A stretch of 64,000 bases of DNA from NCBI RefSeq assembly GCF_037042905.1, contig NC_087247.1, forward strand, positions 53,506,001-53,570,000, given 5' to 3'. Positions 905 through 23,982 of this stretch are shown piece after piece; within the stretch, counting starts at the first letter, position 1; each line of letters opens with the position of its first letter. A model generated the notes under the pieces. That model had not been told where the DNA came from. It did no database searches and saw nothing but the letters and a program-made list of their open reading frames with translations. The DNA is from Lytechinus pictus (taxonomy: Eukaryota). The position numbers and the translations under genes are program-made.

Positions 905-1081
905 ATGTCGGATTGTTTAGAGAACACAGACGGCTCAAGTTTAAATGTCACTAAGATGAACCGTCTTCAAGCTTTCCAAAGTAATTTGGATCGCATTTGG
1001 ATCTCGTGTATAGTATATCCGAATGAGGATGAAGAGGGAGGAAGAAGTCCAAACAGCATATTTTGCGACTTGATATCCGAG
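905..1081 (+). CDS. ZNF292/RLF-like gene, probable coding exon 1
   Basis: ACAATG start, 59 open codons (MSDCLENT...FCDLISE), donor GAG|GTGAGC, directly downstream of a CpG-rich promoter-like segment; phase matches exon 2. Confidence 0.6.
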
Positions 1082-4000
1082 GTGAGCTGAGCTGAGAAGG
1101 GGCTGAGAAGCGGTCGTCGATCGTGGGTTTGAAATGCGTGCTATGTGATGTGGCCATAATGGCACATTCCGATTACCAGCGCATTCAATTCTTGTATACA
1201 TATATTCAATGGGGCTATCACATTTTTGTGATAAATGTATTTAAATTACATACAAGCTAAATCCCCGTATGTAATTATAACACTTCATAAGTCTTGTGTC
1301 ATGTGCTAGAGCCTAGGCCTAGGATTAGGAATAATTATGAATATGATTATGATTGTGAATGTGAGTAGTGATTGTGAACGTAAACTAAGTAAGAAGTGTG
1401 ACTGTGGCATTCAAACTAAGAAAGTCAAACGTGCCCACTTAATACTGACTTAGTCTTAGATCCCGGGTTGGGGGAGGGGGGCACTCAGTATATAATGATA
1501 TTGATAATGAGTGGTGGGTATGTGCCGTGGAGAGGACCCCCATTTTTACACTCAAATTTCCGTTCCAAGGCAAAGCATTTTTATCTTATTGAGAAAAAGA
1601 ACGAAACTAAAGCTGCTCCAATTCCAAGGCATAGCATTTTCTTATCGAGAAAAAAAGAAGAAAGAAATTTGTTCCGAAGCTTCGCATATTTTTCGTTACG
1701 CCGTTCTAGCTGTATTGATCCACTAAATTGAGCTGCATTTGTGGTGAAAAGCGGCCGCAGAGCGCTGTACGACCATCGCCTCTGAGCTGCGTGAGCGCAC
1801 CCGGCGCCCGTGCCGCCGGTCTAGCTGCATGCACGTATGCCTGTTCCACAATGTCAAACGACATTTAAAAACATACCTTTTTGTAAGTTTACGATCGGCG
1901 TTCTGAAACGTTTAAATGAAAGTAAGCATGGATACATCCATGTTTTGGACTAATCATGTATGAAAACACTGATTCTGGCCTGAAAAGTGTAAGCATAGAC
2001 ATGCCTTATGGGTACCAATGAGTGGGGATGATTTTTCAGAGCATTTTAAAGTTGCAATTGACTGTGGGTCATGATGAAGACAAAGAAAAATCACACTATT
2101 AAATTGAGCTCCTTTTTAGAATCTCAGGAGAGCGATTTATTGAGCTCCACAAAATTATTAATGTGAAGGACTTCTCAACTTTCCCCAGAGCACTCATCCT
2201 ACGAACGAGGTTATATAGAGGGTGGCTCAACTTAACCCATGGGTGGGGCAAGTTGAGCCATTTGCAGGGTTGGGCTCAATTACAAAGTAAATGATCAAGT
2301 ACATAATTAATTACATTTTTTTTTTTGCATAATTGTAATTGTAATTGAAAAAATGTAATTGACTTCAATTGCTGTCAATTACTTTTACTTTACAATAAAC
2401 TTGAAGGACAAGTTCACCCCAACAAAAGTTGATTTGAATAAAAAAAGAAAAATCCAAGCATAACACTGAAAATTTCATCAAAATCGGATGTGAAATAAGA
2501 AAGTTATGACATTTTAAAGTTTCACATAATTTCACAAAATAGTTATATTGACATCCGGGTCAGTATGCAAATGAGGAGACTGATGACATCATCCACTCAC
2601 TATTTCTTTTGTATTTTATTATATGAAATATTCTAATTTTCTCCTCATTGTCAAGTGAAACAACAGGTATTTCCTCCATGAACATGTGGAATTAGCATTG
2701 TTTAAAACTATATGGTTTAGTCAAGTTGGTCCTTATTGTCAAATCTGTAAAAAAGGAAATATTGTATAATTCAAACAATAGAAAACAAAAAAATAGTGAG
2801 TGAGGGACATCATTGACCGTCTCATTTGCATGTCACCGAGTTGTGTTTTGTGAAAATAAGCGAAACTTTGAAATGTCATAACTTATTTTACATACGATTT
2901 TGATGAAATTTTCAGCATTATTCTAGTTTGATTTTTCTCTATTCAAATCAACATTTTACTGGGGTGGACTTAACCTTTAACTAATTCATGATTTAATTTC
3001 ATGACCCTTTTCATGTCAACTGCTTCAGCATCAAAGAGAGTTAAGGCAGAATCTGCGTTCTTTAACCCAAACCTTCATCTCATCAGCTTCTCTGTAACTT
3101 AGAATTATGTGGAAATAGGTGGTACTATGTACATTGTACAAAATAAAAATTGGTTTCATTTATGACTTTTCTAGAAAGTAATTGAAATTGTAATTGTACA
3201 TGTACATGTAAATGACAAAAGTAATTGGTCATTATAATTGAGAAAAATGTAATTTGATTGAAAAGTAATTGTAATTGAACATTTGTTCAATTACGTAATT
3301 TTAATTGTAATCAAAGAAAGTAATTGAGCCCAACCCTGGCCATTTGACATCTTTTTTTTTTCGAAGGTGACAGTGACGTTCAGTGTGGGGATAGAATGTT
3401 ATATATAGGTAAAAATGTTTATAAAGAATTGAATTTTAAGACTAGTTAGTTATTTCTACAAGATTATGAATCATAAAAGTTTTAACATCAAAAAAGCAAA
3501 AAATGGCTCAACTTACGCTGCCTTCCCCTACAATGTGTACCATCCTGTACCTGCACTTTTGCTCATGATTTTATTCATTGCATGCCCAGCCAATGCATAA
3601 TGTATTTTTTTTGTGATATGCTACATGATTATTAATGGCATGCATAATCTTAAATTAACTTTGTGTTCAGTTGTTGAAAATCAGAGTTGCATGGCTCTAA
3701 AAACTTCATTTCAAAATGTAGCCAAATGCTATTCTCTCCATTGTGTTTTGTGCTAAAATTGTGGAAGTATACTAGGCCTGTTTTGAAAGTCCATTTTTGA
3801 TGCACGTGTACACGGCCTGTTTTGCGGTCGTGTACACGTAAACACTGAGAGCCAGTTATGTTACATAATATAACTTGCGTTAGGCCTAAGCCATATCGAT
3901 TATTTTGTAAACAGCTTTCATTCGATGCATCAACATTTGAAGGCGGGAAAATCAAATCATTTTTTTTGCTCCGTCATGACCGCGCTGAAATGCGCTGAGG

Positions 4001-7000: not shown

Positions 7001-10000
7001 TACTAGTATTACTCTTCCAATTTGTCATCACGATGAACGTTGAGGGATTTACACACAAAAAAACCCAGAACATGAGTTATAATGAGGAGACATTGCCAGA
7101 TGCCCCAGTAGCATAAACAAATTGATATTTTATTATTTTGTATACTTAATATTCTTTATTTTTTCTTACTATTATCACCAGAAATGCTTATTGATGATGT
7201 TCTTTTTTTGTTGATAGTTATCGATATTGGTTAGATATTTTTAGCGAGATATCAACAGAGAATTTTCTTACCGATAATACCACTAGTTTTATGTAGATGA
7301 TTGCAATGCACAAAAAGGGAAAAAAAACTTGGGGCATCCAGAGCTGCCAACCATTACGTTTTTGCCGTAATCATTACGTTTTTTCATTAAAATTACGGCA
7401 TTACGGTTTTTCTTTTCAAATTACGTTTTTTGATAATTTTGATAACGTGTGTACATAATTGTATCTATCGTAGTGCGTGTTGAGCCCATTTGAGCCCGAG
7501 ATGAGCCTGGTACTTTCGTGTGCGTAGTCGCCCGCGCCGGCCGGTTTTCCAACGCACTTTAATAATTTAATAGCGCGCGCGTTCATATACGTTAGTTGAA
7601 TATGCGGGCGGCATGCATGGCACGAATCGTGGTATATAGCGACTGGTAAATACGTCTGTAAGGATGATGACGTCATCCAAGACGGCAACTTACGATGACC
7701 CACGAAAGGATTGAGGATGATTATGTTTTGATCATCATTTGAAAGGAAATAGCAGTAACTGCGGTCTAAGGTACGATATTTCTGAATTTCATATATTTTA
7801 TCTTAAATTTGCATGTGATTTCTTTCCCATAAAGTGATGTTTTATGTACAAAAAACGATCTGAAAATCGGATTTCCGCCGAATGTTAGATCTATCGTTAC
7901 TGCTAATACGTAGTCTTTACGCTAGGGCCAACGCTCTTCAGGTGAGTGGAGCCAACGTTCGTTCTGCAGCGCAGAGCGAGGAGTACGATGAATTGGGTAG
8001 GGTAATTCCCCAAATGTAGTAAGAGAAGAGTCCATTTATAATGGAGGGGGATTTGGAGGTTTGAGGGAAATTATTATTCTATTTGCAAAATTTTACAAAA
8101 ATACTCATCATATATTATTAAAGATGGAATCTTCAAAAGATATTTTCATATACTTTAAAATTAATTGTGGTGATAAAGAAATAAAATTTGGAGGCTATTT
8201 TCTTGAATTTATATATATGAATTCCCTTCGGATAATGGTACTGTCTGGTTAATTTTCATCAACTCGTATCAAACAAATACGATGAATTCGGCTTTGAAAA
8301 GACAGGGAAAGCTCTTCCTTGTCCCCTGAAGTAATAATTCTGGGTGATATTTAACATTTATTGATAGTTTCACATGATTTATACTAGAGAGATGTCCTAC
8401 TGCTTTTGGAATTCATTAAAAAAGTTGGCACTGTAGCATTCAGTTTAGCAGGAATGGGAAGATTTGTTCCCCGGTTCTGGCGGCCTAGATGTCTGCTCTA
8501 TAGTGCTGTCACTGCTGGTGATGATTGAGTGTGCGTGCAGTGTGATTGAAGCTGAGCTGTGCACATCGTGAAGTGATCTACGATGGGACTTTTGTGGAAT
8601 GATTTCAACTTCTTATCTATAGATCTATTTGAATTTTAGATTTTATTGATTTATGAATCATTTTTTGTATATTTTTGGAATGTTACATGTACTTCCATTT
8701 TATGACACTTTAATTTTAAAGCGTACTGTTTGGCAAAAACAATGTTACTTGGGAAGAGAAGTCTGAATTGATGTGAACTTTTTTTTATTTCTCTAGTCTA
8801 CAATTTGGTAGTTTTGTCAGGAAACTCAACATAATTAAATGAATTATTTTAGAAGTGGAAAGGAAGCCCCAGAAAAATTGAGCCCTAAAAATGTTCACCA
8901 GAACTGATTTTGGTGCCTCTGAAAGAATTTTTCTCGACAGATCTTCTTTCTGATAAGGAAGTGCCGAAGTAGGTTGCACTACAAAATTAAAGGCCTACTT
9001 GTCATTTTTAGAAAAATTTGCCTTGGTGCCCTTTTGACTAGAATAAAAGTGGCCTTCATGCCCTTTAGAATGGCCTTGATACCCCTTGAAATATTTGGGC
9101 ATCCAAGGCCACTTTGCCGGTTGCCCCAAGCTGAAAGTGCCCTTTTAAAAATGGCCTTGCCCCTCTCAATTCATAATTCAAGCCCTGCTACTGACTGAAT
9201 TAAAGTTGGTAGATTAAATCAAATAGGCCCAAGACTAAGGGTCCAATTTGTAACACTCAGTTATTTAGCCCAGACTAGGCCTAGAGATTATTTTTTTTAG
9301 TTCACTGCATACATACTTTTTGCATTGGATGTTTGTCGCATGTGGTTTTAAGGTTCGTTTTAACACATTCGTTTTTTTTTGTTGGAAATTCCTTTTTTTT
9401 GCCATAATGATTCCTTTTTTTGCTTGCACAAGGTTGGCAGCTCTGGGCATCAAGTACAAGTAATATAGAGAGAGTGCTTCCAATAAATGATAGCATTAAT
9501 TGTTTTATTTTTCCTATTTCAAATGAGTGGAGAAGAGCAAAATCTTCTTTGTCTGAGGTATCCATTTTGATGGTGCCAAAAGTACCGGTATATGAAGGTA
9601 TAGAACACGTGTGCTACCTCATGTGACCCGCCATGCCCGTATAGTGAATAGCGAATACTGTATACTCCTTTGTGAACTCGGCCTTAGCCGTGTAAAATGG
9701 TGTTAGTATACAGTTTACTGTGCTTCCTGCTCAAAGCATCTCATGAAACTTCAGATATTTCTATTTGAATATGCAGCTTAAAATCAAGAAGCAAAAACTG
9801 AATTTGAAAAAAAAGGGTTAACTTTTCGAAGAATGGCCCTTTACCATCATATCTATGAAAAAGATCTGAGACATAGAGAGGTGCCTCTAAGCAACTAAGA
9901 TAGAAGAAATTGATGAGAATAAGCTACTAGTATCAATTAATTCTGTATTTTTTGTCTTCCATCAGGCAGTAGATGAATTCTTCAGCGGTCGTTTCAGCCA

Positions 10001-13000
10001 CCCTCCACATGAAGTACTAACAGGTTTGCACAGTGCCCTGAGGATTATTGCTACTTCTTCTCACAGCTTCTATGAGGAAGATGAGCAACTCACTAGTGTC
10101 TGTAAGAAGATATATATGTAAGTACTGTATGTAGGGTCAAAGCACTGAGCCACCTTGAATTTCTTTCCTTTTAACACATTGGTTTATTTTCAATTGCTCT
10201 AATGCCAGTTCGTCCAAACACCAACTCATCTACTATCAATTGCTCTCCCATCAGTTAATCCACTATCCACATGGTCTAATTGCCATTTCGTCCACTCACC
10301 ATTTCATCTAATAACCAGTTCCAATAGCCATTTAGTCCATATACCATTTGGTTTAATTGGACTAAGTGTTAATTGTGCCGAAAATGAAATGGATATTAGA
10401 CCAACTTGTTATGAGACGAAATGGTCAGCGATGAACTGGTGATTAGACAAAGTGATGATTGGACCAAATGGTTGTTAGACGAAATGTTGATGGACAGAAT
10501 GGCATTAGACTAAATGAAGGTAGACCGTGTGATGAGTGGATGAGTTGGCAGTAGATGAATTGGCATTTTACCAACACATTGAGCTCTATGCCTGAAAAAC
10601 TTTGGGACAAGGGTGTATAGAAATATTTGCATAATTCAAAGTTTATTTGATGTCAACAAATTTTGTATTTTTTTAAATTGTCATTTTAATGTTTTTTCCT
10701 CTCATTTTATTAAGAAATTGTTCATCTTACATTTAGTTTCTCTAAGTCAGCAATGCTGTATTGTATTCCGTAATATATATGCAAGACTGTAGAGGTGTTC
10801 CACTTGTCAGAGAATTTCAGTTGTAGTTTATAAACAGAGATTCATGTAAAATGTATCCATGGTTGATGGAATTTTGACTAATTAAATGTATTTTTATACA
10901 ATAATTTGAAGACACATTGTGGGAAAGTTAATGTACTTTCTTTGGAACCATTGATTTAACTGTATTCATTGTGTGATTACATTGAATATTTGCAGCTACT
11001 GTGTAGAGATACTTCTTGACAAATCTTGGATGAGTGTGCAAGATGAAAGCAGAGCATCAGCAACCAAAGACTTTTATAAATTCTTCTGCTGTCTTTGGAA
11101 CTGGTCTCAAGATCGATTCCTGGTTTTGGCCATTCTTAGCCAGAAGCCATGGGGCCATGAGATAATGAATCAGGTGCTTGCAGGAGAGGAAAATACAGAC
11201 AAGCCAGAAGGTATTTTTATTATTATTATTAAGTCCTGTTTTGAGATGATAAATACGAAAGCCAATATAGGTTTGCCTTTTTTTTAGGCAAAGCCGCAAA
11301 GGTTTTTTTTTCAGCTTTACACTTGATCAGGTACATTTATTCCCAGCTAAGAAATATTTTTGCAAATCACAGTTCCAGTTATTTTAGGTATGTCAATTTT
11401 TTTTTAAAGTTACCTTTATATTTCAAGTCAATCTACTCCCATTCATATCTTTATAGACTTGTCAAGGTAGGTTTAAATGTTGTCAAATGCATGAAACCAT
11501 TTCATGCATTATTATGCAGGGAATAATTTTCCTGGTATTGCATTGCAATTTTCTCTAGTTCACGAGAATTGGACATAAGAGTAATCAAGTATCACTAAAC
11601 ATCCTGTGCAAGTTTCAGGTCACATGACCAAGATCAAAGGTCACTTTTAGGGCCAATAAACTTTGGCTATGTTGGGGGTATTTGTTGAATTGCCATCATA
11701 ACTTTGAAAGTATAAGGATCCAGTTTATGAAACACGGACAAGGTAATCAAGTACATGTATCACTGATCATCTTGCACAAGTCTTACGCCACATGATCGAG
11801 ATCAAATGTCATTTATAGTCAATGAACATAGTATTTTATTATCATATGCATGGTGTTGATTGTGAATAATTATTCAATGATTTCAAAGTCAGCACTACTG
11901 CTGCTACATGTATATTGAATCGCGTAATGCAGGTGAGATTGCCAGAGGCGTTTCACTTGTTTATGTCCTTGCCCACTGTAGGTAGATTCCGGAGGTATAA
12001 TGATTTCACTCTTGCAACATCTAAAGAATTGCTTGACAGATTAATTTCAAACTTGGTCAAAGTATACATTTAGGAGTAACAGAGATCTGATTAAATTTGT
12101 GGTAAAAAAGACAGGGGTCAAATGCAGAGTTGCCAACCTTAAATAATATTAATGAGATGTATTCTGATGTAATTCAGTGTTTACTTCCCGATTGAATGAT
12201 TGAGTGAAAAACCATTGTTAACATATTTTTTCTCATAAGAAAAGATTTGGTTCAGCCGTTTGGTAATTCACATTGTAATTTCTCATCTGATAAATATTTA
12301 GTAAGTGTTGGCATCTCTGCAAATGTTGCAGAGGTCATCTTATTCTGACAATGATAATATAAATGTTTGAGGGATCATTTTCATTCTGTGTTCATGTATG
12401 CATATTAGAAGGATGATAATTTGATTAGATTTGGAGGTCATGAGATAAATGTGAAAAGGTCACAATCCTTGCATAGCTGAAAATGTATCTTTGAGGAGTC
12501 AAATTCAAACTTGGATCATGTATGCATATGTGAGATGAATTGATTAGATTTTGGGGTCAAAAGGTCAGAAGTCATTATTTGAAAATTTTAGAAGTTGGCT
12601 ATATACTGAATTTTTGATATGGCAATGACAGAGGCATGAATATGAACTATCTGCATTAGAGAATCTACATGTATCTAGTTTTGTTTTCATTCTACCTATT
12701 TATGGAAAAAAATGTATTGAATGTAATTATGAACCATTGTATATAAAAGTTGGTGATTGATTTGTATGGAATGTATCTGATTTAGTTGATAGATACCTGA
12801 CCTTAGAAGGAAAGTACCTCCTTGAACATCGTCTGCAAGTCTTGATCCAGGAAGGCAACCCCCTGCATGCCTTGAACTTAGCCAGAGCCTGCACTGATCA
12901 CCCTGTTCTCGGACAAGAACCTATCTTCCTAGAGACTCTCTTTCTACTCTACTTCAATCTTGGTCTGACCCAAGAACTTGAGTCACAGGTAGGGTCAATC

Positions 13001-16000
13001 TACATGTATCTCTAATCAGTTAGGAAATATTCCTAGTCATGTGATATGTGATCTAATTCATTAATTTTACATATTTATTGAAGCTTTGTAAGTAAAGCAA
13101 ATATTTAACAAGTGTGTGTATATGTTTTCACCTGAAAATAACATCAAGCTTCAGGCCTTTGAATTTCAAATTTCAAATTTTTATGGCAAGGCCTCTATGC
13201 CGTAGGGCCTATTTCTTGATTCAAGCACAAAGAGGGGATATTAAAAAGGGCACCAAAAATGTCAAAAGCCTTGACCTTGAGGGGATATGAAATATGTTCC
13301 CCAAAACAGAATTAAATAGTTTTGAGTCAGAGTGGTTAAATGAGGGCAATATGGTTCTTTTTAATTGTTACTGTGTACAAGCATACAGAATCGTGGGCTT
13401 GGATGAAATCAGTTGGGAATACAGATACGGATATTATGGAGAAATGATTTTGCACGAGCACAAAAAGAAAATAGCAAGTTTTGCAGAGGAAGGGGTCTGA
13501 ATATTATAGTCACTAGCCATACAACTGAGACGTAGCTGAGCCATTGTGACTTATTTTGTGTGGAGTAATCAACAGATTAATTACATGTTTATTTATATCT
13601 TGTCTCCAGAATACATTTTTCAGATAGTAATTATATAATATTGACTGGCCTGAGGGGAACATCAAATACATTGCCTGCACTAGAATCATATTGGCCAGAG
13701 TCTTTAGATGAGGGCAATAGGGTGCTTTTAAGGGCAGTATATTTTATGTTCCCAAAAGAAATGCCAGTCAATATTTTTATTTTTATCAAAATGAGACATC
13801 TAGAGCAAAAATTGTGAAAATTTAGATATGTTACCCTTTAAGAATGGGAATCTATTTAGTCATGTTGAGCAGACAAGGCCTCTGAACTTTACCATTGTGA
13901 CATAATTGAAATGATGCGTTCCTTGCCTGGGGACGCAGTATCCAGCGTTGTCTCATCTTGATTAACATTATGACGTATGGCACTGCGCGGTTCAATAGGA
14001 CGCGTATGCGGATGCGTAGAATACACGGATATAAGCTCTGCCTTTTGCCAGCTACATTTCCACAAATTTTCTCATAGATTTTCCTGAGTGGGCAAGTAAG
14101 CAGGCAATAATGTATTTAAGTTGCCCTGCTCAGATGTCTGATGCGGTTAATAATATAGATATATGGACTGCTTTGAGAGGCATGGTTGTTTCTAGAGGCT
14201 CAAGGGGACCGCAACGCGACTATGCACGAGGGCTTTGCCCGAGGGCATGGTCTGGCCGATGCGGTACCCGCGAGCCGAATTGAAACAACCATGTCTCGAA
14301 TATAAAAGCAGTCCATATATGTTTTATGAACCGAATTATTAAACATTTGATCTAACGTTAGGGGCTAGTCTATAAAGTCTAGATCTAAAAGCCCTGGCCC
14401 CAAGCTAACGTTAGGACTTAGGTCTAGGCCCTTACTTAGCCCTGACCCTGAAGTTAGGTCTCAAAGTCGAATATCATAAGCAGTTCCCGAGCAGTTCATA
14501 CCGATAGGCCCTAGATCTAGATATTTTTAGGAACCAAATTACTAATTAGGTTCTGATTCTGAATAGGGTCTAGGCTAGATCTAACGTTCAGAAATAAATC
14601 CCTATTAGAGTGTAATCTAACGTTAGATCTATAGTCGACTAAACCTACGTCCTAACGTTAGATCTAACGTTAGATCTAATAACTTCTAAGCTAACTAACG
14701 ACAATTAACATTAGATCTACCCGTCATAACGTTGTCGTTTGTCATACCTAAGGCTAAGTAACGAGTAACGTTATGTTAACCTTAGAAAGTACAGTGACCG
14801 TCTAACTTTAATCTTTTCACCCGACTCACCTTTTGCGACTGCGAGCATGCATTTGAGCGGTCTGCGACAAGACTTGATGATTGATACATCCGTTATGTCC
14901 TTAATAAGTTAGTTTTCTTTTTAATAAATGCCATATATTTTTAACTGGAATTAACAAGCAAAAGTCAAAGATCGGCATCGTTCCATCGATATGTCATATC
15001 CGTTGCGCGCACTTGCGCAATAAGCGCGTAAATGTGCGAATTGTCTAAAACTTTCGATCAAATCGCGCGGATATTTATGGTATCCGCAATCACCGCAGAA
15101 AGCAACATTTTGCATGCAATCAAATGAGGATCTCAGCCAAATTTTGCTATGCCCGTCGTTAAGGGGCGGGTCAGGGGGCAACGGGCAGAAATCTTGTTAA
15201 CTATGCCCGTTGCCCTTGGTTACCACCTTAGTTTGTTGTTTTGAAGGCATGGTCGTTTACATGACCTCAGTTTTGACCAATCAGAGGAACGGATTATTCG
15301 ACATTCTTAACGAGAGGTTTATAATAATAAATATTATTATTATTCATTTCAGGTTGAAGATCATCCAACACTGGAAGATGTCATGAAAGTAGCAGAAAGA
15401 ATGAGCAGTTACTGTCCAGGAAATGCATCACATATATTCAGATTAATCATAAAACAGCTTTGGGATGAAGATAATCATAGCAGTCTTCTGATAAGAGTGT
15501 CTGTAGGTTTGTGGCTTGATGCAGAGTTGAAGGTTTGCTCACCCCGATCTGATAAGTTTGCTGAAGACCTAGAAGGCCTCTCAGATCTGACAAATGATCC
15601 CCTCCATTTATACAACCTTGCTGACATAGTGTACAAGAAGGTAAGCGGTCAATATAATTTCAGTTCTTTATGGCTAAAAATGACATATTGGATAAAAGGC
15701 ATCATTTACTTAGAATTTTTAATGAGGATTACACAATCACAGTTGACTGTGTGTCATTTTGATTCTGTAAAAAATGAATAGAATACCAAATAGAATAAGG
15801 CATGAGCATAAATTAAAGTAGCCTTTAAAAAAATCAGGACCAGTTCTGTTTTCTAGGCTATATTTTCGTTTTAGCAGAGCGAGACTATAGGCGCCGCTTT
15901 TGGCGCCACTTTTCCGGCGGCGGCATCGTCAACTTGAAATCTAAACCTAAGGTTAAGTTTTGAAATGTCATCATTACTTAAGAAGTATGTGGGCCTAATT

Positions 16001-19000
16001 CATGAAACTTCTACATAAGTGTAATCAAGTATTACTGAACATCCTGCCCGAGTTTCAAGTCACATGAACAAGGTCAAAGATCATTTAGAGTCAATGAACT
16101 TAGATTGTGTGGGGGGATCAGAACAAAATCTTAACTGAGGTTATTTTTTTTTAAATGTCAACACTTTGAAGGCATAAGGATTTAGTTCATGAAATTTGGA
16201 TATAAGTGTAATTAAGTATCAGTGAATATCCTGCATGAGTTTATGTCACATGACCAAGGAAAAAGGTCTATTAAGGTCAATTAACTTTGGCCATCATAAT
16301 TTGAAAGTTTATGGATCTAGGTCATGAAACTTGGATATGAGAGTAATGAATTATCATTGCACATCATGTGCATGTTTTAGGTCACATGATCAAGGTCAGT
16401 TGTCATTTAGCATCAATGAACATAGTATTTTATTATCATATGAATGGTGTTTTTTGTGATTAATTATTCAATAGTGGCTTTTAAAGTCAGCACTGCTGCT
16501 ATATTGAATCATGTAATGCAGGCGAGACTGCCAGAGGCGCTCCACTTGTTGCTCTTATTTATGCCTACTGTGATATTGTTATATTTTTATAGTGTTGTAT
16601 TTCTAAGACAATTGAGTGAGGGGAGGTTTCTCACTAGGAATAACTGATTTTTTCTACATGGCCAATATCTGACCCCCCCATGATTAAGACATTAAAATAA
16701 AAAGGAAATTTCCATCTCTTTTTAATTTAGATAGTTTAGATACACTTTTGTTACTTGGAACATAACTTTAAGACAATACTTTTCACAATGTAACAGAATT
16801 TATCAACTGCATCAGATATGTAGCTTACAAATTGATGAAAGATGTGTTATAGGATTCTTTTTGGTGTTTGTTTTTATATGTAGTAGACAATTATAATATA
16901 TGTTTTAAATTATTTTTCTAAACCATAGAAGGGATTGATTGAGTTATACTTATTTGCATTTATTCTTTCTTTAGGTTGGTGAACCTGCTATTCCACCCCT
17001 GGTTTCCCTTTGTCTCAAGGCTTTGCTGGTACCAAGTGTCTCTGTTTCTGAGGATATCATCCAAGCAGCACAGATAGATTATGGAAATGCAGCTGTCTGT
17101 CTGCTGTTGTCTGAGATTTTGAAAAATGATGAGAGGATACAGCGGATGTGCCTCCTTGCTGCGTTTTTCATTGCTCCTTCACTCGATAGACTATCTGCTC
17201 TTCAGGACAGTTACCAAGACTCAAAGGAATCAAATTTTCCAAAGCTAACCTCCTATCAACAGCATGATCTTATCAGGTGCATGGACTTCTTCATACCTGT
17301 GCACGTATCGTTATCTGAAGATTGGTCATCAGTTTCAAGCACCTTAACAGGATATCTTCGGAAGAGCAAGGTAATGTGCATCTCATTGAGCAAACCATTT
17401 GGTGATGTAAGAATGCTGAAGTTTTATGATAAATCTTGGCATCCTGTTCATCAAGACTTCAAGCCATTGGGGGTGGTTAGGGTAAAGGAGGCATTCCATT
17501 CTTCAGTAAGATGCCATGAAAACATAGTGCTCTTGTCCTGCAAGCATGAACGCCAAATTGAACCCAAATCAAAGAAGAAGCGTCTTGTTGAAACAAGGAG
17601 TCTACAAGAATGTTCAGAACCTCCAAATGCTATTCCTGTGTTGGATGCTCAAACTGATCAGAAATGGTTACCCTGCTATGTGTTGGATCTCTCCCAAGAA
17701 ACATTAACAGAACAGGAATTCATTGATGATGCCAGTGATGAACCAGTGGAAGATGGGGCTTTTAGCAGAGAATCACCTGCCTCGCATAGTCCCCAACCAG
17801 TGCTAGAAATGCCATCAGTATTACCACCGGGAGGAACATCAGATATGTGTGCTCATACTGAAGAAAGGACAGATCTGCAAGAAAAGTCACAAGAATTGTT
17901 GGAAAATAATGACACAGTGTGTGTTTCAATTAACAAACAGTCCAGATCATCTGATCAAGAATCAACACTTCTAATGCATTCAAGTGTCAATGAAAGAGAA
18001 AGAAAATTGATGTTTATAAATGAGGAGGAACAATTCAACCCCCAACAGGGAGTAGAATATGGGAGATTGCATTTGAACAGAAATGACCTTGAAAATGTTG
18101 ATGATGGTATGACATTGCTTAATGATGAACTTCATGTAGATAGCCCCATACCTGTTGATAGAAGTGATAGCAGTGAGGCAGAGACTTTGAATTATGCAGA
18201 TGAACCAAAGTACATTTCTAATAGCAATGAGACTGTGAGTTTTGTTGATGAACAGGATTGTAGTTCTAATAATTTAGATGAGGAAGATGTATCATGCTAT
18301 GATGAGGAGGAGGATGAAGGTCCCCTTGATCTGAGGAAAGTAAAAACAGTTTGTATGTTGAATGGAAAAGTGGAAGAAATCAAAGATCCAAACATAATTT
18401 CTGATGAATTTGAGAACCAAGACTCATTGAATTTAAATGCCAATGATGTACATCCATGTTGTACACAGACAGAACCATTGGACCTTACCAAATCTGTAGT
18501 TCAAAGTGCTCTTACTGATAAAGCTAAGGTTGTTCTTGTGAAAGATAAGAAAGCTGAAGAACTGTTGTTAAGGAGACATTCACAGGATTTCAATGAAGAG
18601 CATGATGATTCTTATTACTTAAGACCACCAAAAGAAAGGGACAAGAATGATGAATTTCAAATGTGTAGTTTGTCATCAGATCAAGGGTTTGACCTCAGAC
18701 AAAGAAAATCACATATGAAGACTTCTGTGTGTAGTGTAAAGCTGACATGTTTCATGAAACAAAGAGCCAAGAATCAGAATCCACATAATCTACAGTTATG
18801 GAAATTCGTGGTTAAAGAGAGAGCCAAGGTTCAAGGAGATGAGAGCTATCCACATGAAGTAGATATTGATGTAAAGTCACCAGAAGAAAGTCTGACTGGT
18901 TTCTCAGGTGAAAGAGTGCTCCATATTGAAAAGTCCTCATCTGCAATGCAGGATGAACAAGATGATGTGGAGGACATACAGATTCTTCATTCAGAAACAA

Positions 19001-22000
19001 ATAGAGAATCAGGAGAAAACTGGACAGATGTGTTCAGTGAGAACAGCATCCCATGGATAGATGGACAGTTAGAACAAGATGAAGGAGAAAAAGAGCCAGA
19101 AAGTCCAGCCTGGACTGCAATAACAAGTGTCAATCTAGACAAATCTCCAGAGGATGTTTCATGTGAAGACATGACTAATATCAGAGAGCATGTTACAGAA
19201 GAAATACCTATGCTGGATTATGAACCTCAACCTTATCCTTTGAATAGGTTAAGAAATTCAGAGTTGCCAATCTTGACCCCAGAACATGGACTTGATTTAA
19301 CAGTGTTACCTTCAACAGAGGGCTCTTTGCAGACCTGTGAAAATGCAGGCATTCCTCTACTTCTTGATTGCTATGAGGAAAATCCCCATGTAAATGTGAC
19401 CACTTACCAGTATGTTGACAATGAGCAAGAAGAATATCAAGATATTGAATACCCTCAAGGTATAAATGATCTTCCTGGGAGTGCCTTTTGTGAGATTGAT
19501 GATCAAAGTTCTGCAGATCACATAGAAACAATAGAAGAAGCAGCATTTAGCAATGAGATAGAAACTTTGGTTTATATACCAGTTGAACCGCTCAATTTCC
19601 ATCAGGAAGGGCTGCCTGATAGGGAATCTGTTCATTGCACGTGTCTTCAAGGGAAAATGGAGAAGATGGCTTCCAAAGAAGATGAACATTTTAATGCCAA
19701 AGAATGGCATTGCATACAACAGAGAAAAAATGAAGATATTACAGGGAGTATTACCAATGGTATAGACATTGGCCTTGATATGCGGGACAAATCATTAGAT
19801 CACATAGCACACGGTGAAGTCTGTTTCAAGGATACCCTTGAAGGTCACTTAGATAGTCAGGATGACCATGTCGTCTTAGTGAGTACAGGAAACAAGATAG
19901 GAGATGATGAAAGAGAACATGTTGGTGCATTGTTAGACTATTCATTTGCTTCAGAAGAGCGGATAGAGATGAATAGACAGACAGAGAGTGAATCAAGCCC
20001 AGTTAATGAGATTAACTTGAGATCATTGGCTGCTTCATCAAATCTAGGAGAAAATTTAGTTGTAGATGCCAACTTGTCACTTCCTGATTTAAAAGGGATG
20101 TCCATGGAGAGACATCGCTATGACAGGCAAGATCCTAATTTGGTAGGGATAACTCGTCTTGAGGAAGGTAAACGTGTAGGGATTGTGACTAACAATGCAT
20201 TGTCAGAATCAACAGAGTACAAGACCATTGCTAATCCTTCACATCAAATTGCAGCACAACCGTTTCCTGTGGTTGAAGCTAAAGAAGTTAAATCGCCATT
20301 GCTGATACTTGAAACTAAAGCCAAAAATGATTCGTCGTCATCAAAGAAAAGAAAAGCTAGTCAAAGTAGAAATGTCTGGTCTGCATTTTCTGCTACACAG
20401 GAGTCTCCAAAGATAATGGATAATTCAAACGCTCTTAATACATCAGATCCTCTAGACCTCAGAGATGAAAAAACACAAAATGGTAATGACTGCATATTCA
20501 TCGCAGATGACTTTGAGCTTAAGAAGAAGTCCATCATTGCTGGAATCAAACTTAGGATTATGAGTCAGAAGGATAAACCTTCGGTGCCAGAAAGTGATTC
20601 AAGTACAAAAATGGAATATTTGGTTTCTTCCTCAAAGGAAGATGTCTCTTGTCAACACAGAAAGGCTCAATTTAAGAGGTCAGTCTGTTGTGTCAACATT
20701 CCATGTAGAATGGATAGGAAAAATGTCAAAGATAATCCATTTGCTCAATCTGAACAATGGAACTGCATATCAAAGACTTCGGAAAGCAAAGTGGATTCAG
20801 TGGATCACATGCAAAATACAGACCTTGAGCCTAATTCTCTTGATGAAACTAATACATCATTACATGAGAGATTATCAGACCCAAGTGCAACTGAAGGACT
20901 ATCAGAAAGTACGTTTCCTAATGGATGCAGTGAATTTAGAATCCCATGGGTAGATGGACAAGTTTCTCATGAAAATCAACCAGAATTAGACAGTCAAGCT
21001 TTACTTCCTTTGGAAAATGAAACAATACCAGATCATGAGAATATCATCACAGAAGCATATGATGTTTCATCAGATATTACAGGAGATCCTGATGTAAATG
21101 TAACCCAGCCATGTTTGGAAACGCAAGAGATATCTATGGATTATCCAGGCACAAAGGGTGTAGATTCAAGCATGCAAGGGATTACAAGTTTTCATCTGGA
21201 TCAATATGGGTGTGTTCCCTTTGATGACATGAGAGAAGTAGAAAATCAAACAGAACACATAATGGTACAGAATTCCTTACAACTCAATGAAGTACAATCC
21301 AACTATATGGATGAAGATGCAGTAGTCCAGGTTTTGAATGAGGAACAAGCTGCAGGAGCAGAAAATTGTTATACACCTCTGAGCATGGTGATCAGTGACA
21401 AGTCATTTAGTAACTCTTCATGCAGAGATAAAGACACCCCTCAACCAGTGGATTCTTGTGAAAAAGAGTTTTGTAGTGATGAAATAACTTGTCAGGAGGT
21501 AAGATGTGAGCATCCTAGGAGTAAAGACGTGATCTGTTACAAAGATGATATGGATTATTCAATGGAAACCACTGATTTCAGCATTGAAAATTCATGCTCT
21601 GAAGAGAGGGAAACAGTCCTAGAAGGTAAGATGGGAAATGTGGAAGACAGTCACCTATCAAGAAAGAGACACTTCAAGCAGTCTGTTTCCTGTATCAGTA
21701 TCCCATGTAACATAGATAGAAATAATGCCACAGTGAGTCCTCGAGCTGAAGCATGGTTCAGAAATATAGAAAGCAGAGATTCAAAGAAGTGTGAATACAT
21801 TGCAGAAGACATCATTCCTGTTGTAGAAGTTAATGCAGCTGATTGCGTCAATGTATCAACAAGTGATACATTTTCAACTGAAGCCAATGGAAGTGCTTCA
21901 ACCCACCAGGTGAAAGGGCTATATCTTGAAGCACCTGAGTTATCAATTCAACATCTCTGTTCCACAACAGATAGTCTTTTGTTGCCAGGAGAAGATGTAA

Positions 22001-23982
22001 CCAGCATAGCAAGAAATGTTATGAAAAATGTGACAGCTGAATCTCAGGAGGAAGATTGCGACACTGAAAGCCACTCTGTTGAAAACAAGGAGTCAAAGTT
22101 TCAAACTCAGATCAAAGAAGCTGAAGCAGAAGCCAGTACAATGTTAGAGTTAATAGCGATTGGAGAAAGTAGTGATAATGCAGGAAATATCGCTCAAGGT
22201 ATTGACAACTTCTGTTATTCCGATAAATTCTATAATGGTGTAGGGGAAAAGGAGTTGACCGTTCACAACAACAAAGCCTTTGAAATTACAGAGAAGAGAA
22301 ACAAGGAAACAAAAGTTAGCAATTCAATTACAGGAATTGTTGATCAGAATAATGAAGATCAAATTAAGAAACTTTCAGGATCAAAAGAGAACATCATCTG
22401 TGATCAGGGGTCCCAAGTTTGTTCCGAAGCAGAAGTTCTTTATCAATCTGAAGGAAATGTGTGTGCGAAAAATGACCAAGTTGTTGAGCAGTATAATGTT
22501 GCCTGTAACAAGGATGCTGTGTGCATAATGGGGAATGACCAGAATGACCAGTTGGATGTTGACTCTGAGAGTAGTGTATGTGATGGAAATGTTGATAAAC
22601 ATCTACAAAAATGCACAAATGACTTACATGTATCCACTGAGGAATGCTCTGCTCTTAAAGAGATTGCATCTGGTAGTGACATAGGGCAACTGGATGAAAT
22701 TAAGACTGAGAAACAGTGCCAAAGAGAGAAAGGTGAATATTCAGTTAGTGAAATTGCCAAGTCACATGATGATGAAGATACAGTTCCAGGTACAGGTGGA
22801 CAATCCTCTCAGTTTCAAGATGAAGTGAATCCATATAATGTGCATCCAGGTGCCAACCAGACAAGTGAGACACTTCTGAAACAAGAATTAGAAGACATTG
22901 ATTTTTGCCGAATAAATGCAGAACAGTCAGGTGTGAAGGAGCAGAATGGAGAAAATAGTGGAGCTCTTGAAGTTGTGGAAAAACCAAGTTTCAAAACATC
23001 AGTCCACAACTCTGACCATCACATAGGGAGGGATCTGAAAAGTGAATTGAATGTGTTTGAACCAGTAAGAAGAAAGACAGAGGTAATGAGCAATGAACAA
23101 GAACCTATTGGGAAGGTAGAAAAATGTAAGAGACCTTGCAAAACATTTATCTCAGGAAACCGTAAAAATGAGTTATCAAATAACTCACCATTGTTTAAGA
23201 AGAGAGATGCCATGTATGGTTTGACATATAGTAAGACAAAATCGTCTGCTGGCCAGACTAGAAGTCAGTCACCATCCATACAATATTTCAATTCCAAGAA
23301 AACAGGAAAGGAATCCTCAAAAGTGGACATTCAGGTGTGTCCTAACACCTCCAATAAATTCATCTCAAAGAAATCAATGAAACCATCTAGTAGACAACAA
23401 CCTTGTGATAAAGACAAAATAATAAACAAACTACTTCCTATCAGACGCTTTGCATCTAGGAAAGCTGGCACAGAAACTCCACCTCATAGAGAGTCATCAA
23501 GTAAATGTCCTGTACAGGTTTCCAACAAATTCATCTCAAAGAAACCATGTGAAGCTGCTTCAAAGCCGGTGATGTGTGACAGGGTTACTCGGAATACAGT
23601 TAAAACCTCAAATGCACCAGTACGTCAAACTGTGAAACAGACAAGCTCAGATTCACATGCATGCAACAAACTATCTCACCTACCTCTTCCATTAAGATCA
23701 ACAGCAAACGAGGGAAGATCCTCTTCTTTGAGAATGTCTGTAAAGTCTTCCTCCTGTAAACCCCAGAAACGTTCATGTTCTGAAACTTCTCCCCCACCGA
23801 AAGTCATGAAACTCTCTTCCACTTGTCCTTCACTTGTAACTTCAACCAAAAATCCTACACAAAAGCATTTATCCACTTCTAGGAAGTCAGTAAGGCAGGG
23901 GTCAAAAAAGGCCTGCTTAGCATCATGTGGTGTGACTACCAGAAAACGGATGAAAATGGAGGGCAACAAACGGAGGAAATGA
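905..23982 (+). CDS. ZNF292/RLF/ZNF654-family protein lacking recognisable C2H2 fingers; 6 coding exons: 905-1081, 9966-10117, 10996-11210, 12786-12988, 15353-15640, 16975-23982; about 2680 aa
   Basis: All junctions are GT-AG with consistent phases (0,2,1,0,0). Spliced peptide PWGHEIMNQVLAGE..VDRYLTLEGKYLLEHRLQVLIQEGNPLHALNLARACTDHP..IF and LCLKAL..AVCLLLSEILKNDERIQRMCLLAAFFIAPSLD resembles, from recall, the ZNF292/RLF N-terminal domain (FLAFEGPILLDMRIKHLIK..ATALAKLCSDHP; LCVRALQL..LEVRRACQLTEFLIEP). Confidence 0.8.
2265..3338. mobile_element. hAT-type MITE with GTAATT subrepeats
   Basis: TIR CAGGGTTGGGCTCAATTAC; 8-bp TSD GCCATTTG (2257-2264, 3339-3346). Confidence 0.85.
2405..2976. mobile_element. 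Kolobok-type MITE nested in the hAT MITE
   Basis: AGG..CCT termini, long imperfect inverted repeats, TTAA flank on the right (TTGA on the left). Confidence 0.75.
3773..6208. mobile_element. Non-autonomous hAT-type element
   Basis: TAGGCC.GTTT / AAACGGGCCTA termini, GTGTACACG subterminal motifs at both ends, 8-bp TSD AAGTATAC (3765-3772, 6209-6216); no transposase ORF. Confidence 0.8.
4194..5025. mobile_element. P-element-like MITE nested in the hAT element
   Basis: Perfect 31-bp TIR CATGGACCTATTACAAATGGACATTCAACGA; 7-bp TSD GCAGAAT. Confidence 0.8.
6657..6960. mobile_element. Harbinger-like element end; an inverted diverged copy lies at about 1853-2005
   Basis: GGCCGTGTTTATGCTTCCACTTTTCAGGCCAGAATCAG matches the reverse complement of 1970-2005 and the similarity extends about 150 bp. 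Confidence 0.5.
7339..9445. mobile_element. Non-autonomous DNA transposon with 6-bp TSD
   Basis: TIR CAGAGCTGCCAACC / GGTTGGCAGCTCTG; TSD GGCATC (7333-7338, 9446-9451). Confidence 0.8.
9966..10117 (+). CDS. ZNF292/RLF-like exon 2
   Basis: ttccatcag|GCA...AT|gtaagt; AVDEFFSGRFSHPPHEVL...CKKIY; phase 0 to 2. Confidence 0.7.
10181..10572. mobile_element. Foldback MITE with about 15-bp subrepeats (MuDR/Merlin-like GG..CC ends)
   Basis: 8-bp TSD AACACATT (10173-10180, 10573-10580); periodic units inverted about the centre. Confidence 0.7.
10996..11210 (+). CDS. ZNF292/RLF-like exon 3
   Basis: tttgcag|C...GAAG|gtattt; YCVEILLDKSW...KPWGHEIMNQVLAGEENTDKPE. Confidence 0.8.
11560..11961 (+). repeat. 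Helitron/Helentron-type non-autonomous repeat (3' part)
   Basis: Internal GGTCACATGACCAAGGTCAAAGGTCA-type units and 3' GCAGGTGAGA..CCAGAGGCGTTTCACTTGTT, shared with 15872-16550. Confidence 0.55.
12125..12319. mobile_element. Short MITE related to the 6-bp-TSD family
   Basis: CAGAGTTGCCAAC / GTTGGCATCTCTG ends; TSD CAAATG on both sides. Confidence 0.7.
12786..12988 (+). CDS. ZNF292/RLF-like exon 4
   Basis: tttag|TT...CAG|gtaggg; DRYLTLEGKYLLEHRLQVLIQEGNPLHALNLARACTDHP. Confidence 0.85.
14150..15325. mobile_element. Probable Crypton-like non-autonomous element
   Basis: TAAT/ATAATA ends, internal inverted repeat ATATGGACTGCTTT..CATGGTTGTTTC / GAAACAACCATG..AAAGCAGTCCATAT around GCCCGAGGGC; class assigned by recall only. 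Confidence 0.4.
15353..15640 (+). CDS. ZNF292/RLF-like exon 5
   Basis: tttcag|GTT...AAG|gtaagc; 96 codons, in frame with ORF 15383. Confidence 0.8.
15872..16550 (+). repeat. Helitron/Helentron-type non-autonomous repeat
   Basis: 5' AGCAGAGCGAGACTATAGGCGCC plus (CGG)n, tandem internal units, 3' GCAGGCGAGACTGCCAGAGGCGCTCCACTTGTT. Confidence 0.55.
16975..23982 (+). CDS. ZNF292/RLF-like giant terminal exon 6 (7008 nt)
   Basis: ttctttag|GTTGGT acceptor in frame with the 2319-aa ORF; acidic, low-complexity middle; basic Ser-rich tail ending in NLS-like RKRMKMEGNKRRK*. Confidence 0.88.
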   Translation, partial: VGEPAIPPLVSLCLKALLVPSVSVSEDIIQAAQIDYGNAAVCLLLSEILKNDERIQRMCLLAAFFIAPSLDRLSALQDSYQDSKESNFPKLTSYQQHDLIRCMDFFIPVHVSLSEDWSSVSSTLTGYLRKSKVMCISLSKPFGDVRMLKFYDKSWHPVHQDFKPLGVVRVKEAFHSSVRCHENIVLLSCKHERQIEPKSKKKRLVETRSLQECSEPPNAIPVLDAQTDQKWLPCYVLDLSQETLTEQEFIDDASDEPVEDGAFSRESPASHSPQPVLEMPSVLPPGGTSDMCAHTEERTDLQEKSQELLENNDTVCVSINKQSRSSDQESTLLMHSSVNERERKLMFINEEEQFNPQQGVEYGRLHLNRNDLENVDDGMTLLNDELHVDSPIPVDRSDSSEAETLNYADEPKYISNSNETVSFVDEQDCSSNNLDEEDVSCYDEEEDEGPLDLRKVKTVCMLNGKVEEIKDPNIISDEFENQDSLNLNANDVHPCCTQTEPLDLTKSVVQSALTDKAKVVLVKDKKAEELLLRRHSQDFNEEHDDSYYLRPPKERDKNDEFQMCSLSSDQGFDLRQRKSHMKTSVCSVKLTCFMKQRAKNQNPHNLQLWKFVVKERAKVQGDESYPHEVDIDVKSPEESLTGFSGERVLHIEKSSSAMQDEQDDVEDIQILHSETNRESGENWTDVFSENSIPWIDGQLEQDEGEKEPESPAWTAITSVNLDKSPEDVSCEDMTNIREHVTEEIPMLDYEPQPYPLNRLRNSELPILTPEHGLDLTVLPSTEGSLQTCENAGIPLLLDCYEENPHVNVTTYQYVDNEQEEYQDIEYPQGINDLPGSAFCEIDDQSSADHIETIEEAAFSNEIETLVYIPVEPLNFHQEGLPDRESVHCTCLQGKMEKMASKEDEHFNAKEWHCIQQRKNEDITGSITNGIDIGLDMRDKSLDHIAHGEVCFKDTLEGHLDSQDDHVVLVSTGNKIGDDEREHVGALLDYSFASEERIEMNRQTESESSPVNEINLRSLAASSNLGENLVVDANLSLPDLKGMSMERHRYDRQDPNLVGITRLEEGKRVGIVTNNALSESTEYKTIANPSHQIAAQPFPVVEAKEVKSPLLILETKAKNDSSSSKKRKASQSRNVWSAFSATQESPKIMDNSNALNTSDPLDLRDEKTQNGNDCIFIADDFELKKKSIIAGIKLRIMSQKDKPSVPESDSSTKMEYLVSSSKEDVSCQHRKAQFKRSVCCVNIPCRMDRKNVKDNPFAQSEQWNCISKTSESKVDSVDHMQNTDLEPNSLDETNTSLHERLSDPSATEGLSESTFPNGCSEFRIPWVDGQVSHENQPELDSQALLPLENETIPDHENIITEAYDVSSDITGDPDVNVTQPCLETQEISMDYPGTKGVDSSMQGITSFHLDQYGCVPFDDMREVENQTEHIMVQNSLQLNEVQSNYMDEDAVVQVLNEEQAAGAENCYTPLSMVISDKSFSNSSCRDKDTPQPVDSCEKEFCSDEITCQEVRCEHPRSKDVICYKDDMDYSMETTDFSIENSCSEERETVLEGKMGNVEDSHLSRKRHFKQSVSCISIPCNIDRNNATVSPRAEAWFRNIESRDSKKCEYIAEDIIPVVEVNAADCVNVSTSDTFSTEANGSASTHQVKGLYLEAPELSIQHLCSTTDSLLLPGEDVTSIARNVMKNVTAESQEEDCDTESHSVENKESKFQTQIKEAEAEASTMLELIAIGESSDNAGNIAQGIDNFCYSDKFYNGVGEKELTVHNNKAFEITEKRNKETKVSNSITGIVDQNNEDQIKKLSGSKENIICDQGSQVCSEAEVLYQSEGNVCAKNDQVVEQYNVACNKDAVCIMGNDQNDQLDVDSESSVCDGNVDKHLQKCTNDLHVSTEECSALKEIASGSDIGQLDEIKTEKQCQREKGEYSVSEIAKSHDDEDTVPGTGGQSSQFQDEVNPYNVHPGANQTSETLLKQELEDIDFCRINAEQSGVKEQNGENSGALEVVEKPSFKTSVHNSDHHIGRDLKSELNVFEPVRRKTEVMSNEQEPIGKVEKCKRPCKTFISGNRKNELSNNSPLFKKRDAMYGLTYSKTKSSAGQTRSQSPSIQYFNSKKTGKESSKVDIQVCPNTSNKFISKKSMKPSSRQQPCDKDKIINKLLPIRRFASRKAGTETPPHRESSSKCPVQVSNKFISKKPCEAASKPVMCDRVTRNTVKTSNAPVRQTVKQTSSDSHACNKLSHLPLPLRSTANEGRSSSLRMSVKSSSCKPQKRSCSETSPPPKVMKLSSTCPSLVTSTKNPTQKHLSTSRKSVRQGSKKACLASCGVTTRKRMKMEGNKRRK

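Follow-up and report, generated by a model that had tools for sequence, protein, structure and literature searches.

A ZNF292/RLF-family gene of the sea urchin Lytechinus pictus encoding a TPR_Rlf solenoid and no recognisable zinc fingers

Introduction

Both ZNF292, which underlies a neurodevelopmental disorder in humans, and RLF (Zn-15 related/rearranged L-myc fusion), a modifier of epigenetic silencing in the mouse, are regarded as zinc-finger proteins that bind DNA. To our knowledge no role has been assigned to the large N-terminal domain that they share. Mouse Rlf is a nuclear protein with 16 widely spaced fingers that keeps CpG-island shores and enhancers hypomethylated, and Zfp292 is its paralog (PMC4053835, PMC4381397). 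Rlf has been described as "conserved across vertebrates" only (PMC4053835), and a literature search found no paper on invertebrate relatives of RLF, ZNF292 or ZNF654 or on the TPR_Rlf domain.

The 64-kb stretch of Lytechinus pictus DNA analysed here (the window) raises the question of whether a member of this family can do without fingers and, if so, whether its lineage lost them or never had them. An initial annotation, made from the sequence alone, had described a gene at 905-23982 as a family member that keeps the N-terminal domain and the giant last exon but appears to have no zinc fingers. Here, we follow up this reading by gene modelling, transcript comparison, homology and structure searches, and comparison with orthologs.

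Gene structure and transcription

The gene in the window corresponds to the public model LOC129257006 of Lytechinus pictus, annotated as "uncharacterized protein" and encoding 2680 amino acids in six GT-AG coding exons (905-23982). Using tblastn and an exhaustive search of exon boundaries, a single set of GT-AG exons was found to give the exact LOC129257006 translation:

905-1081, plus strand: coding exon 1, residues 1-59, with the ATG at 905 (exact-translation exon set, tblastn)
9966-10117, plus strand: coding exon 2, residues 60-109/110 (exact-translation exon set, tblastn)
10996-11210, plus strand: coding exon 3, to residue 181 (exact-translation exon set, tblastn)
12786-12988, plus strand: coding exon 4, residues 182-249 (exact-translation exon set, tblastn)
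15353-15640, plus strand: coding exon 5, residues 250-345 (transcript contigs cover 15350-15638, joined to 16973)
16975-23982, plus strand: giant last coding exon of 7008 nt, residues 346-2680 and stop (open frame, RNA joint at the 5' end)

The last exon is an open frame of 2335 codons ending with the stop at 23980-23982, and thus encodes 2335 of the 2680 residues. Such a very large terminal exon is found in the ZNF292/RLF/ZNF654 family, and the giant last exon described initially is borne out.

Transcript data agree with this model. The splice joining exon 5 to the giant exon (15640|16975, GT..AG; the joint 15638->16973 with the cut at +2) is present in two independent transcript contigs (X1, X15) and in stranded raw RNA reads (X19, X20), the orientation of which fits plus-strand RNA. 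One transcript contig of 5250 nt runs unbroken from exon 5 through 16973-21299, and no joint was found inside 16975-21299, the 4.3 kb of the giant exon compared with RNA. An exit from this exon towards finger-coding exons, a concern raised by the initial annotation, is therefore not seen in the compared part. The RNA comparison covered about 6 kb, up to 21299; transcription of 21300-23982 has indirect support from word counts, as transcript-like runs account for 0.76-0.79 of the sampled words of 15300-23982 and exons make up 0.84 of that stretch. LOC129257006 is thus transcribed and spliced as modelled.

Family identity and the helical solenoid

A Pfam search of the protein matched one family only, TPR_Rlf (PF25580), at residues 300-430 with 33.5 bits against a gathering cut-off of 27 (E 3.5e-8), and the L. 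variegatus ortholog matched the same family with 32.9 bits. When residues 1-620 were compared by phmmer with 1.84 billion representative sequences, 66 homologs were found, with alignments covering query residues ~40-450 and each beginning at the N-terminus of the homolog. Among the named matches are fish and lungfish proteins called zinc finger protein Rlf, ZNF292, ZNF292b and ZNF654. The claimed membership of the ZNF292/RLF/ZNF654 family is therefore upheld both by a score above the curated threshold and by homology over residues ~40-450. Since this homology spans the products of all six coding exons, the helical domain that had been assigned to exons 3-6 is real, but its extent had been drawn too narrowly.

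Using an alignment of 42 sequences, AlphaFold2 predicted an all-helical solenoid of ~24 helices at residues 13-483, with pLDDT mostly 85-97. Over the whole prediction the mean pLDDT was 77.5 and the pTM 0.71, and pLDDT fell below 50 beyond the solenoid (residues 500-600), indicating disorder.

905-17388, plus strand: span of the TPR_Rlf solenoid, residues ~13-483, introns included (Pfam PF25580, AlphaFold2, omega 0.13)

A specific structural relative of the solenoid was sought and not found, the fold searches returning only generic matches to TPR, HEAT or designed repeats. In a Foldseek search of the PDB nothing reached E <= 0.001, and TM-scores were at most 0.2; VIA-align wide gave generic or designed helical repeats with Z <= 12, a score that the tool itself regards as uninformative for repeats; and no PDB sequence was matched in a profile search. 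The predicted fold supports a helical repeat platform and nothing more specific, and since it matches only generic repeats, the partners of the solenoid cannot be guessed from it.

In an index of 5.8 billion proteins, the one close relative of LOC129257006 is the L. variegatus ortholog, with 91% identity. Word-indexed protein searches returned the two Lytechinus proteins only, and the more distant homologs were reached by exhaustive phmmer.

Orthologs in echinoderms and a hemichordate

The nearest homologs outside Lytechinus are "uncharacterized proteins" of the sea urchin Diadema antillarum, the sea stars Patiria miniata and Acanthaster planci, and the crinoids Antedon mediterranea and Anneissia japonica, together with a protein model of the hemichordate Saccoglossus. 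One of them, LOC119737796 of Patiria miniata, has been auto-named by UniProt as [quoted passage not shown]. Like LOC129257006, these proteins combine the TPR_Rlf domain with a long tail free of Pfam domains, a basic, Ser/Thr-rich end and no fingers. On the echinoderm orthologs Pfam finds TPR_Rlf alone, and the finger pattern has no match in the Diadema, Patiria, Acanthaster, Antedon, Anneissia or Saccoglossus proteins. The hemichordate evidence consists of the one Saccoglossus model, which lies below the Pfam threshold for TPR_Rlf and shows no finger match and two weak sub-threshold matches. Nor does a credible finger ORF occur in the genomic DNA of L. variegatus, Patiria, Antedon or Diadema, where each locus was scanned together with 10-kb flanks. 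The comparison thus extends the fingerless state to six other echinoderm species: the gene had been described as a fingerless family member, which holds for LOC129257006, yet the state is common to the sampled echinoderms rather than special to this gene.

In a maximum-likelihood tree of the solenoid, molluscs form one group, the hemichordate, crinoids, sea stars and urchins another, and amphioxus and vertebrates a third, in agreement with the species tree; the relevant branches have SH-aLRT values of 88-100, and the tool flagged long branches. This topology fits one ortholog per invertebrate genome and an expansion in vertebrates, as far as the sampled sequences go. By descent and N-terminal domain, LOC129257006 belongs to the family, while it fails the feature that gives the family its name, the fingers.

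The gene order is old as well. In Antedon mediterranea the ortholog (L010:10001-24740) is followed by a convergent IPO9 gene (L010:32586-34740), as in the window, and this shared arrangement dates the gene pair to before the split of crinoids and urchins.

Absence of zinc fingers and of paralogs

The absence of fingers from the Lytechinus protein was examined at several levels of stringency. No zf-C2H2 family of Pfam matches the protein even at E <= 10. The pattern C-x2-4-C-x12-H-x3-5-H occurs neither in the protein nor in the six frames of the N-free 64-kb window, and a loose finger pattern is likewise missing from the protein. A looser C2H2/C2HC pattern has three unconvincing matches in the six-frame window, all in short open stretches, which is chance level given the 0-9 matches in shuffled windows. 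A profile of the first finger pair of vertebrate members, built from 17 segments, gave only fragments with negative scores in the urchin and other echinoderm proteins, and past the solenoid the alignment is meaningless. Neither was any other recognisable DNA-binding domain found in the protein. The tail is thus as fingerless as initially described.

The downstream neighbour is IPO9, which lies on the minus strand and is convergent with LOC129257006 (E 1.5e-30 to Importin-9 residues 717-806).

45863-58738, minus strand: IPO9 exons, with Importin-9 residues 717-806 at 45863-46219 and an importin-beta N-terminal piece at 58466-58738

IPO9 must extend below 45863 to reach its 3' end. The earlier statement that no finger ORF lies between the stop and IPO9 agrees with the pattern count of zero in six frames, and the convergent orientation of IPO9 leaves no room for a hidden 3' finger exon.

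A finger-bearing paralog, which the initial annotation had proposed to look for, was not found in the genome assembly. When the whole genome was queried with PF25580, residues 1-620 or a 42-sequence family profile, only the exons of LOC129257006 were matched; these searches were run exon by exon, so that a very divergent paralog could escape them. LOC129257006 is the sole TPR_Rlf gene in the L. pictus genome assembly.

It could still be argued that the gene only appears fingerless through an artefact of annotation or assembly, the real fingers being encoded by sequence missing from the assembly, by an alternative 3' exon or by another paralog. A deposited amphioxus model that hides fingers (see below) provides a precedent, RNA was compared with part of the giant exon (to 21299), and the exon-by-exon design of the genome searches points the same way. 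Yet the window is free of Ns, the 22 kb from the stop to the first mapped IPO9 exon are as devoid of finger patterns as the rest, and a downstream finger exon would need to sit beyond or inside IPO9. In addition, the 5250-nt transcript contig passes unbroken through the giant exon, and four other echinoderm loci agree at the DNA level. We therefore regard an artefact as extremely improbable.

Finger loss or finger gain

Fingers are present in other members of the family. Vertebrate members carry 5-16 widely spaced C2H2 fingers, with a conserved first pair directly past the solenoid (KGFISARFRNWQAYMQYCVLC...). They resemble the urchin protein in the homologous N-terminal TPR_Rlf solenoid (phmmer E 1e-12 to 1e-4), in having one very large last coding exon and in their long low-complexity remainder, whereas the urchin protein has neither the fingers nor the basic lead-in to the first pair that follow the solenoid in vertebrates. 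Mollusc and amphioxus proteins share the N-terminal solenoid, the very long tail and the basic C-terminal end with the urchin protein. Unlike it, the mollusc members (3200-4800 aa) keep five C2HC/C2H2 fingers far downstream, which are conserved among molluscs, and the amphioxus genomic ORF contains a C2H2 pair.

The amphioxus pair emerged from a six-frame scan of the Branchiostoma belcheri locus (GCA_025402995.1), where an uninterrupted ORF of 2025 codons (L011:20324-26401) encodes two good C2H2 fingers 35 aa apart.

L011:22697-22759 and 22802-22867: amphioxus C2H2 fingers (six-frame scan of the locus)

The deposited model, KAI8499553.1, removes this finger segment as an intron. Because the segment is open and in frame, the fingerless look of KAI8499553.1 is probably a modelling artefact or an alternative isoform, and the reading of amphioxus as fingerless, taken from that model, was dropped after the scan.

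The 17-segment vertebrate profile is matched over its full length, its lead-in K-x-R-x-KG-x-I-x-x-R included, by the amphioxus pair and by one mollusc pair. Because these matches score weakly (domain E 0.006-0.02 in a search of 24 sequences), the homology of the amphioxus, mollusc and vertebrate pairs is suggestive and unproven. Should this homology be real, Ambulacraria alone would lack the fingers that molluscs, amphioxus and vertebrates possess, and one loss would suffice. As the pair in the amphioxus ORF aligns, if weakly, with the vertebrate first pair, loss in Ambulacraria, or at least in echinoderms, becomes the likelier course. By this comparison the C2H2 pair is likely to be ancestral and to have been lost on the ambulacrarian or echinoderm stem.

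Alternatively, the fingerless state may itself be ancestral, with chordates and molluscs having gained C2H2 fingers independently in their long last exons and the urchin having lost nothing. In keeping with this, the centipede Strigamia model and all ambulacrarian proteins are without fingers, BLAST detects no more than generic C2H2 similarity between mollusc and vertebrate fingers (E >= 0.012), and the fingers occupy very different positions in the proteins: those of vertebrates begin near residue 560, the amphioxus pair lies near 1260 and mollusc fingers fall within 1200-2900. However, with its 1104 aa the Strigamia model is short and perhaps incomplete, the species tree demands two or more gains against one loss, and the full-length matches of the amphioxus pair and one mollusc pair, lead-in included, come with a similar spacing of 35-38 aa. 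Independent gain thus seems unlikely. Returning to loss, the fuller scenario, in which echinoderms, perhaps all Ambulacraria, discarded ancestral fingers more than 450 million years ago while keeping a constrained single-copy solenoid gene beside IPO9, appears to us evenly balanced between right and wrong.

The tail, its motifs and the basic C-terminus

Past the solenoid, the protein divides by composition into two parts:

17389-23139, plus strand: acidic, fast-evolving and probably disordered tail, residues 484-2400 (D+E 375, K+R 185; charge-hydropathy)
23140-23979, plus strand: strongly basic, Ser/Thr-rich C-terminal segment, residues 2401-2680 (K+R 61, D+E 14; NLS-like K/R clusters)

In charge-hydropathy analysis, 18 of the 21 windows past residue 600 fall on the disordered side. 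The net charge is -188 for the tail, by far the most acidic among the echinoderm and hemichordate proteins, and +43 for the last 250 residues. NLS-like K/R clusters occur at residues 545, 1469, 2408, 2656 and 2677. No Pfam domain was found in the tail, and self-BLAST detected no internal repeats, while motif searches did find repeats. BLAST of residues 451-2680 against all homologs returned two unnamed fragments only, covering 451-546.

The C-terminal 250 residues are net-basic (+12 to +46) and Ser/Thr-rich in all invertebrate family members examined. In three vertebrate members the same segment ranges from -10 to +11; vertebrate C-termini are therefore not basic, in contrast to the strongly basic urchin end. 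Among the invertebrates, composition is conserved here without conserved sequence. ESM Atlas look-alikes of the basic C-terminus were uninformative, with a best score of 0.76.

Two kinds of short motif recur in the tail:

18322-18336, plus strand: PLDLR, CtBP-binding type, residues 795-799 (motif match)
18475-18489, plus strand: PLDLT, CtBP-binding type, residues 846-850 (motif match)
20449-20463, plus strand: PLDLR, CtBP-binding type, residues 1504-1508 (PVDLR in L. variegatus)
18703-18834, plus strand: basic/Cys/Trp motif copy 1, RK-x3-K-x-SV-x6-C-x10-P-x5-W, residues 922-965
20659-20790, plus strand: basic/Cys/Trp motif copy 2, residues 1574-1617
21661-21786, plus strand: basic/Cys/Trp motif copy 3, residues 1908-1949

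The PLDL motifs match the ELM pattern for CtBP binding, and P[LVI]DL[STRNK] is found three times in the probably disordered tail against 0.05 expected from shuffles. All three are kept in both Lytechinus species. Among the other echinoderm orthologs the PLDL motifs are absent, as is the threefold basic/Cys/Trp motif.

The basic/Cys/Trp motif was considered as a decayed finger and rejected, having one invariant Cys and no conserved His; hhalign against an alignment of vertebrate and amphioxus finger pairs likewise gave a probability of 0.3%.

Both kinds of motif also appear to belong to a larger duplicated module (18322-20100 and 20449-21010), in which PLDL is followed 75-125 residues on by the basic/Cys/Trp motif and ~90-115 residues further by (S/E)xxIPW(I/V)DGQ. 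The module occupies residues 795/846, 922 and 1037, and again 1504, 1574 and 1668, with a partial third occurrence consisting of the middle motif only (1908). It was not found in Diadema, sea stars or crinoids.

Selection on the solenoid and the tail

Comparison of L. pictus with L. variegatus gave the following values of omega:

Residues 1-483 (TPR domain): 0.13 (95% bootstrap 0.06-0.25)
Residues 484-620: 0.27 (95% bootstrap 0.11-0.80)
Residues 621-2400 (tail): 0.91 (95% bootstrap 0.66-1.20)
Residues 2401-2680 (basic end): 0.50 (95% bootstrap 0.25-1.22)

Windows with omega above 1 were not taken as positive selection, as they contain few synonymous changes each and the pooled tail interval is 0.66-1.20.

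These values bear on whether the tail has any function. It may be that only the TPR domain is functional and that the 2200-aa tail is a near-unconstrained spacer, kept open since truncation would destabilise the mRNA or the protein. The tail omega of 0.91 speaks for such a spacer. So does the tail sequence, for which BLAST detects no similarity to other echinoderm orthologs, even that of Diadema, and so does the tail length, which varies among echinoderms from about 900 to about 2200 aa; the other echinoderm and hemichordate tails are 900-1300 aa, against 2200 aa in Lytechinus, and share no detectable sequence with it. Nevertheless, both Lytechinus species have preserved the reading frame across 7 kb: the 276 observed substitutions produced no stop, against 11.7 expected, and zero was never reached in 2000 random trials. 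All 10 indels in the exon are multiples of three, whereas in intron 5 and the 3' flank taken together this is true of 6 out of 37 (P about 1e-8). Divergence of the giant exon (3.9%) is also less than half that of intron (10.5%) and flank (8.4%). Further against a mere spacer are the basic, Ser/Thr-rich C-terminus of all invertebrate members, with its omega of 0.50, and the three PLDL motifs, whose number greatly exceeds chance and which both Lytechinus species retain. A pure spacer is accordingly rather improbable. Measured by substitution and indel patterns, the solenoid is under strong constraint, and the tail is near-free in sequence yet keeps its frame with no sign of decay.

As a separate observation, dS of the tail (16975-23982 against L008:22900-29964) is about 0.047-0.05, roughly half of the 0.096 of the TPR exons and the 0.105 of intron 5. 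Constrained synonymous sites, a locally different mutation rate or misalignment of the intron could account for this low value.

Proposed function

We find it somewhat likely that LOC129257006 encodes the single L. pictus ortholog, predating the vertebrate duplications, of ZNF292, RLF and ZNF654, and that this protein, with a ~470-aa solenoid, a fingerless disordered tail and a basic end, acts as a nuclear scaffold. The NLS-like clusters and the basic C-terminus would fit a nuclear protein. The solenoid would be the conserved working part and serve as a docking platform for partner proteins. The tail may be selected for length, openness and charge rather than for sequence. The short motifs that it carries would differ from one lineage to the next; those of Lytechinus include the three PLDL motifs and the threefold basic/Cys/Trp motif. 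If the protein touches chromatin, the contact would be unspecific as to sequence and would run via the basic C-terminus or via partners, with no reading of DNA. Since fingers are absent from LOC129257006 and from every other echinoderm checked, the conserved N-terminal domain probably works without direct DNA reading. A role as chromatin adaptor or co-repressor scaffold, suggested initially, would be compatible with such a protein.

Co-repressor scaffolds that recruit CtBP through PxDLS motifs include ZEB, ZNF217, Wiz and RIP140, and these known scaffolds mostly bind DNA or DNA-bound factors via other domains. LOC129257006 resembles them in its three over-represented, putatively CtBP-binding PLDL[RT] motifs. 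Among the echinoderm orthologs, however, the CtBP motifs of TPR_Rlf proteins are confined to Lytechinus, so that CtBP recruitment is not a conserved function of the family, and the co-repression predicted from the motifs would be at best specific to Lytechinus.

The sequences are already public, some of them auto-named by databases, and the protein is not a new kind of system. If the proposed history is true, the solenoid has an autonomous, finger-free core function, to which the fingers of ZNF292 and RLF are a targeting add-on, and the urchin protein represents a natural separation-of-function allele with which the core function and its partners might be found. The solenoid is an old bilaterian module, it persists as a constrained single copy in a fingerless phylum, and amphioxus has its hidden finger pair; taken together, these observations point to the solenoid rather than the fingers as the conserved core. 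As gene knock-outs are feasible in L. pictus, the role of the solenoid could be studied in this urchin.

Repeated elements in the window

Apart from the splice into the giant exon, all remaining RNA joints fall within the repeat-rich intron 5. At 15700-16700 the depth of RNA and contigs reaches thousands to tens of thousands, and odd joints and loose ends are numerous; the segment consists of highly repeated transcribed elements outside the LOC129257006 mRNA. Further downstream, two ORFs encode near-identical peptides on opposite strands (...IICIMYSLIKFK-NYLRFLTTWRVKSRLFSISYIKQNVGTSRP...), which fits a large inverted repeat or foldback element:

29017-29289, plus strand: ORF of the near-identical pair
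32199-32618, minus strand: ORF of the near-identical pair
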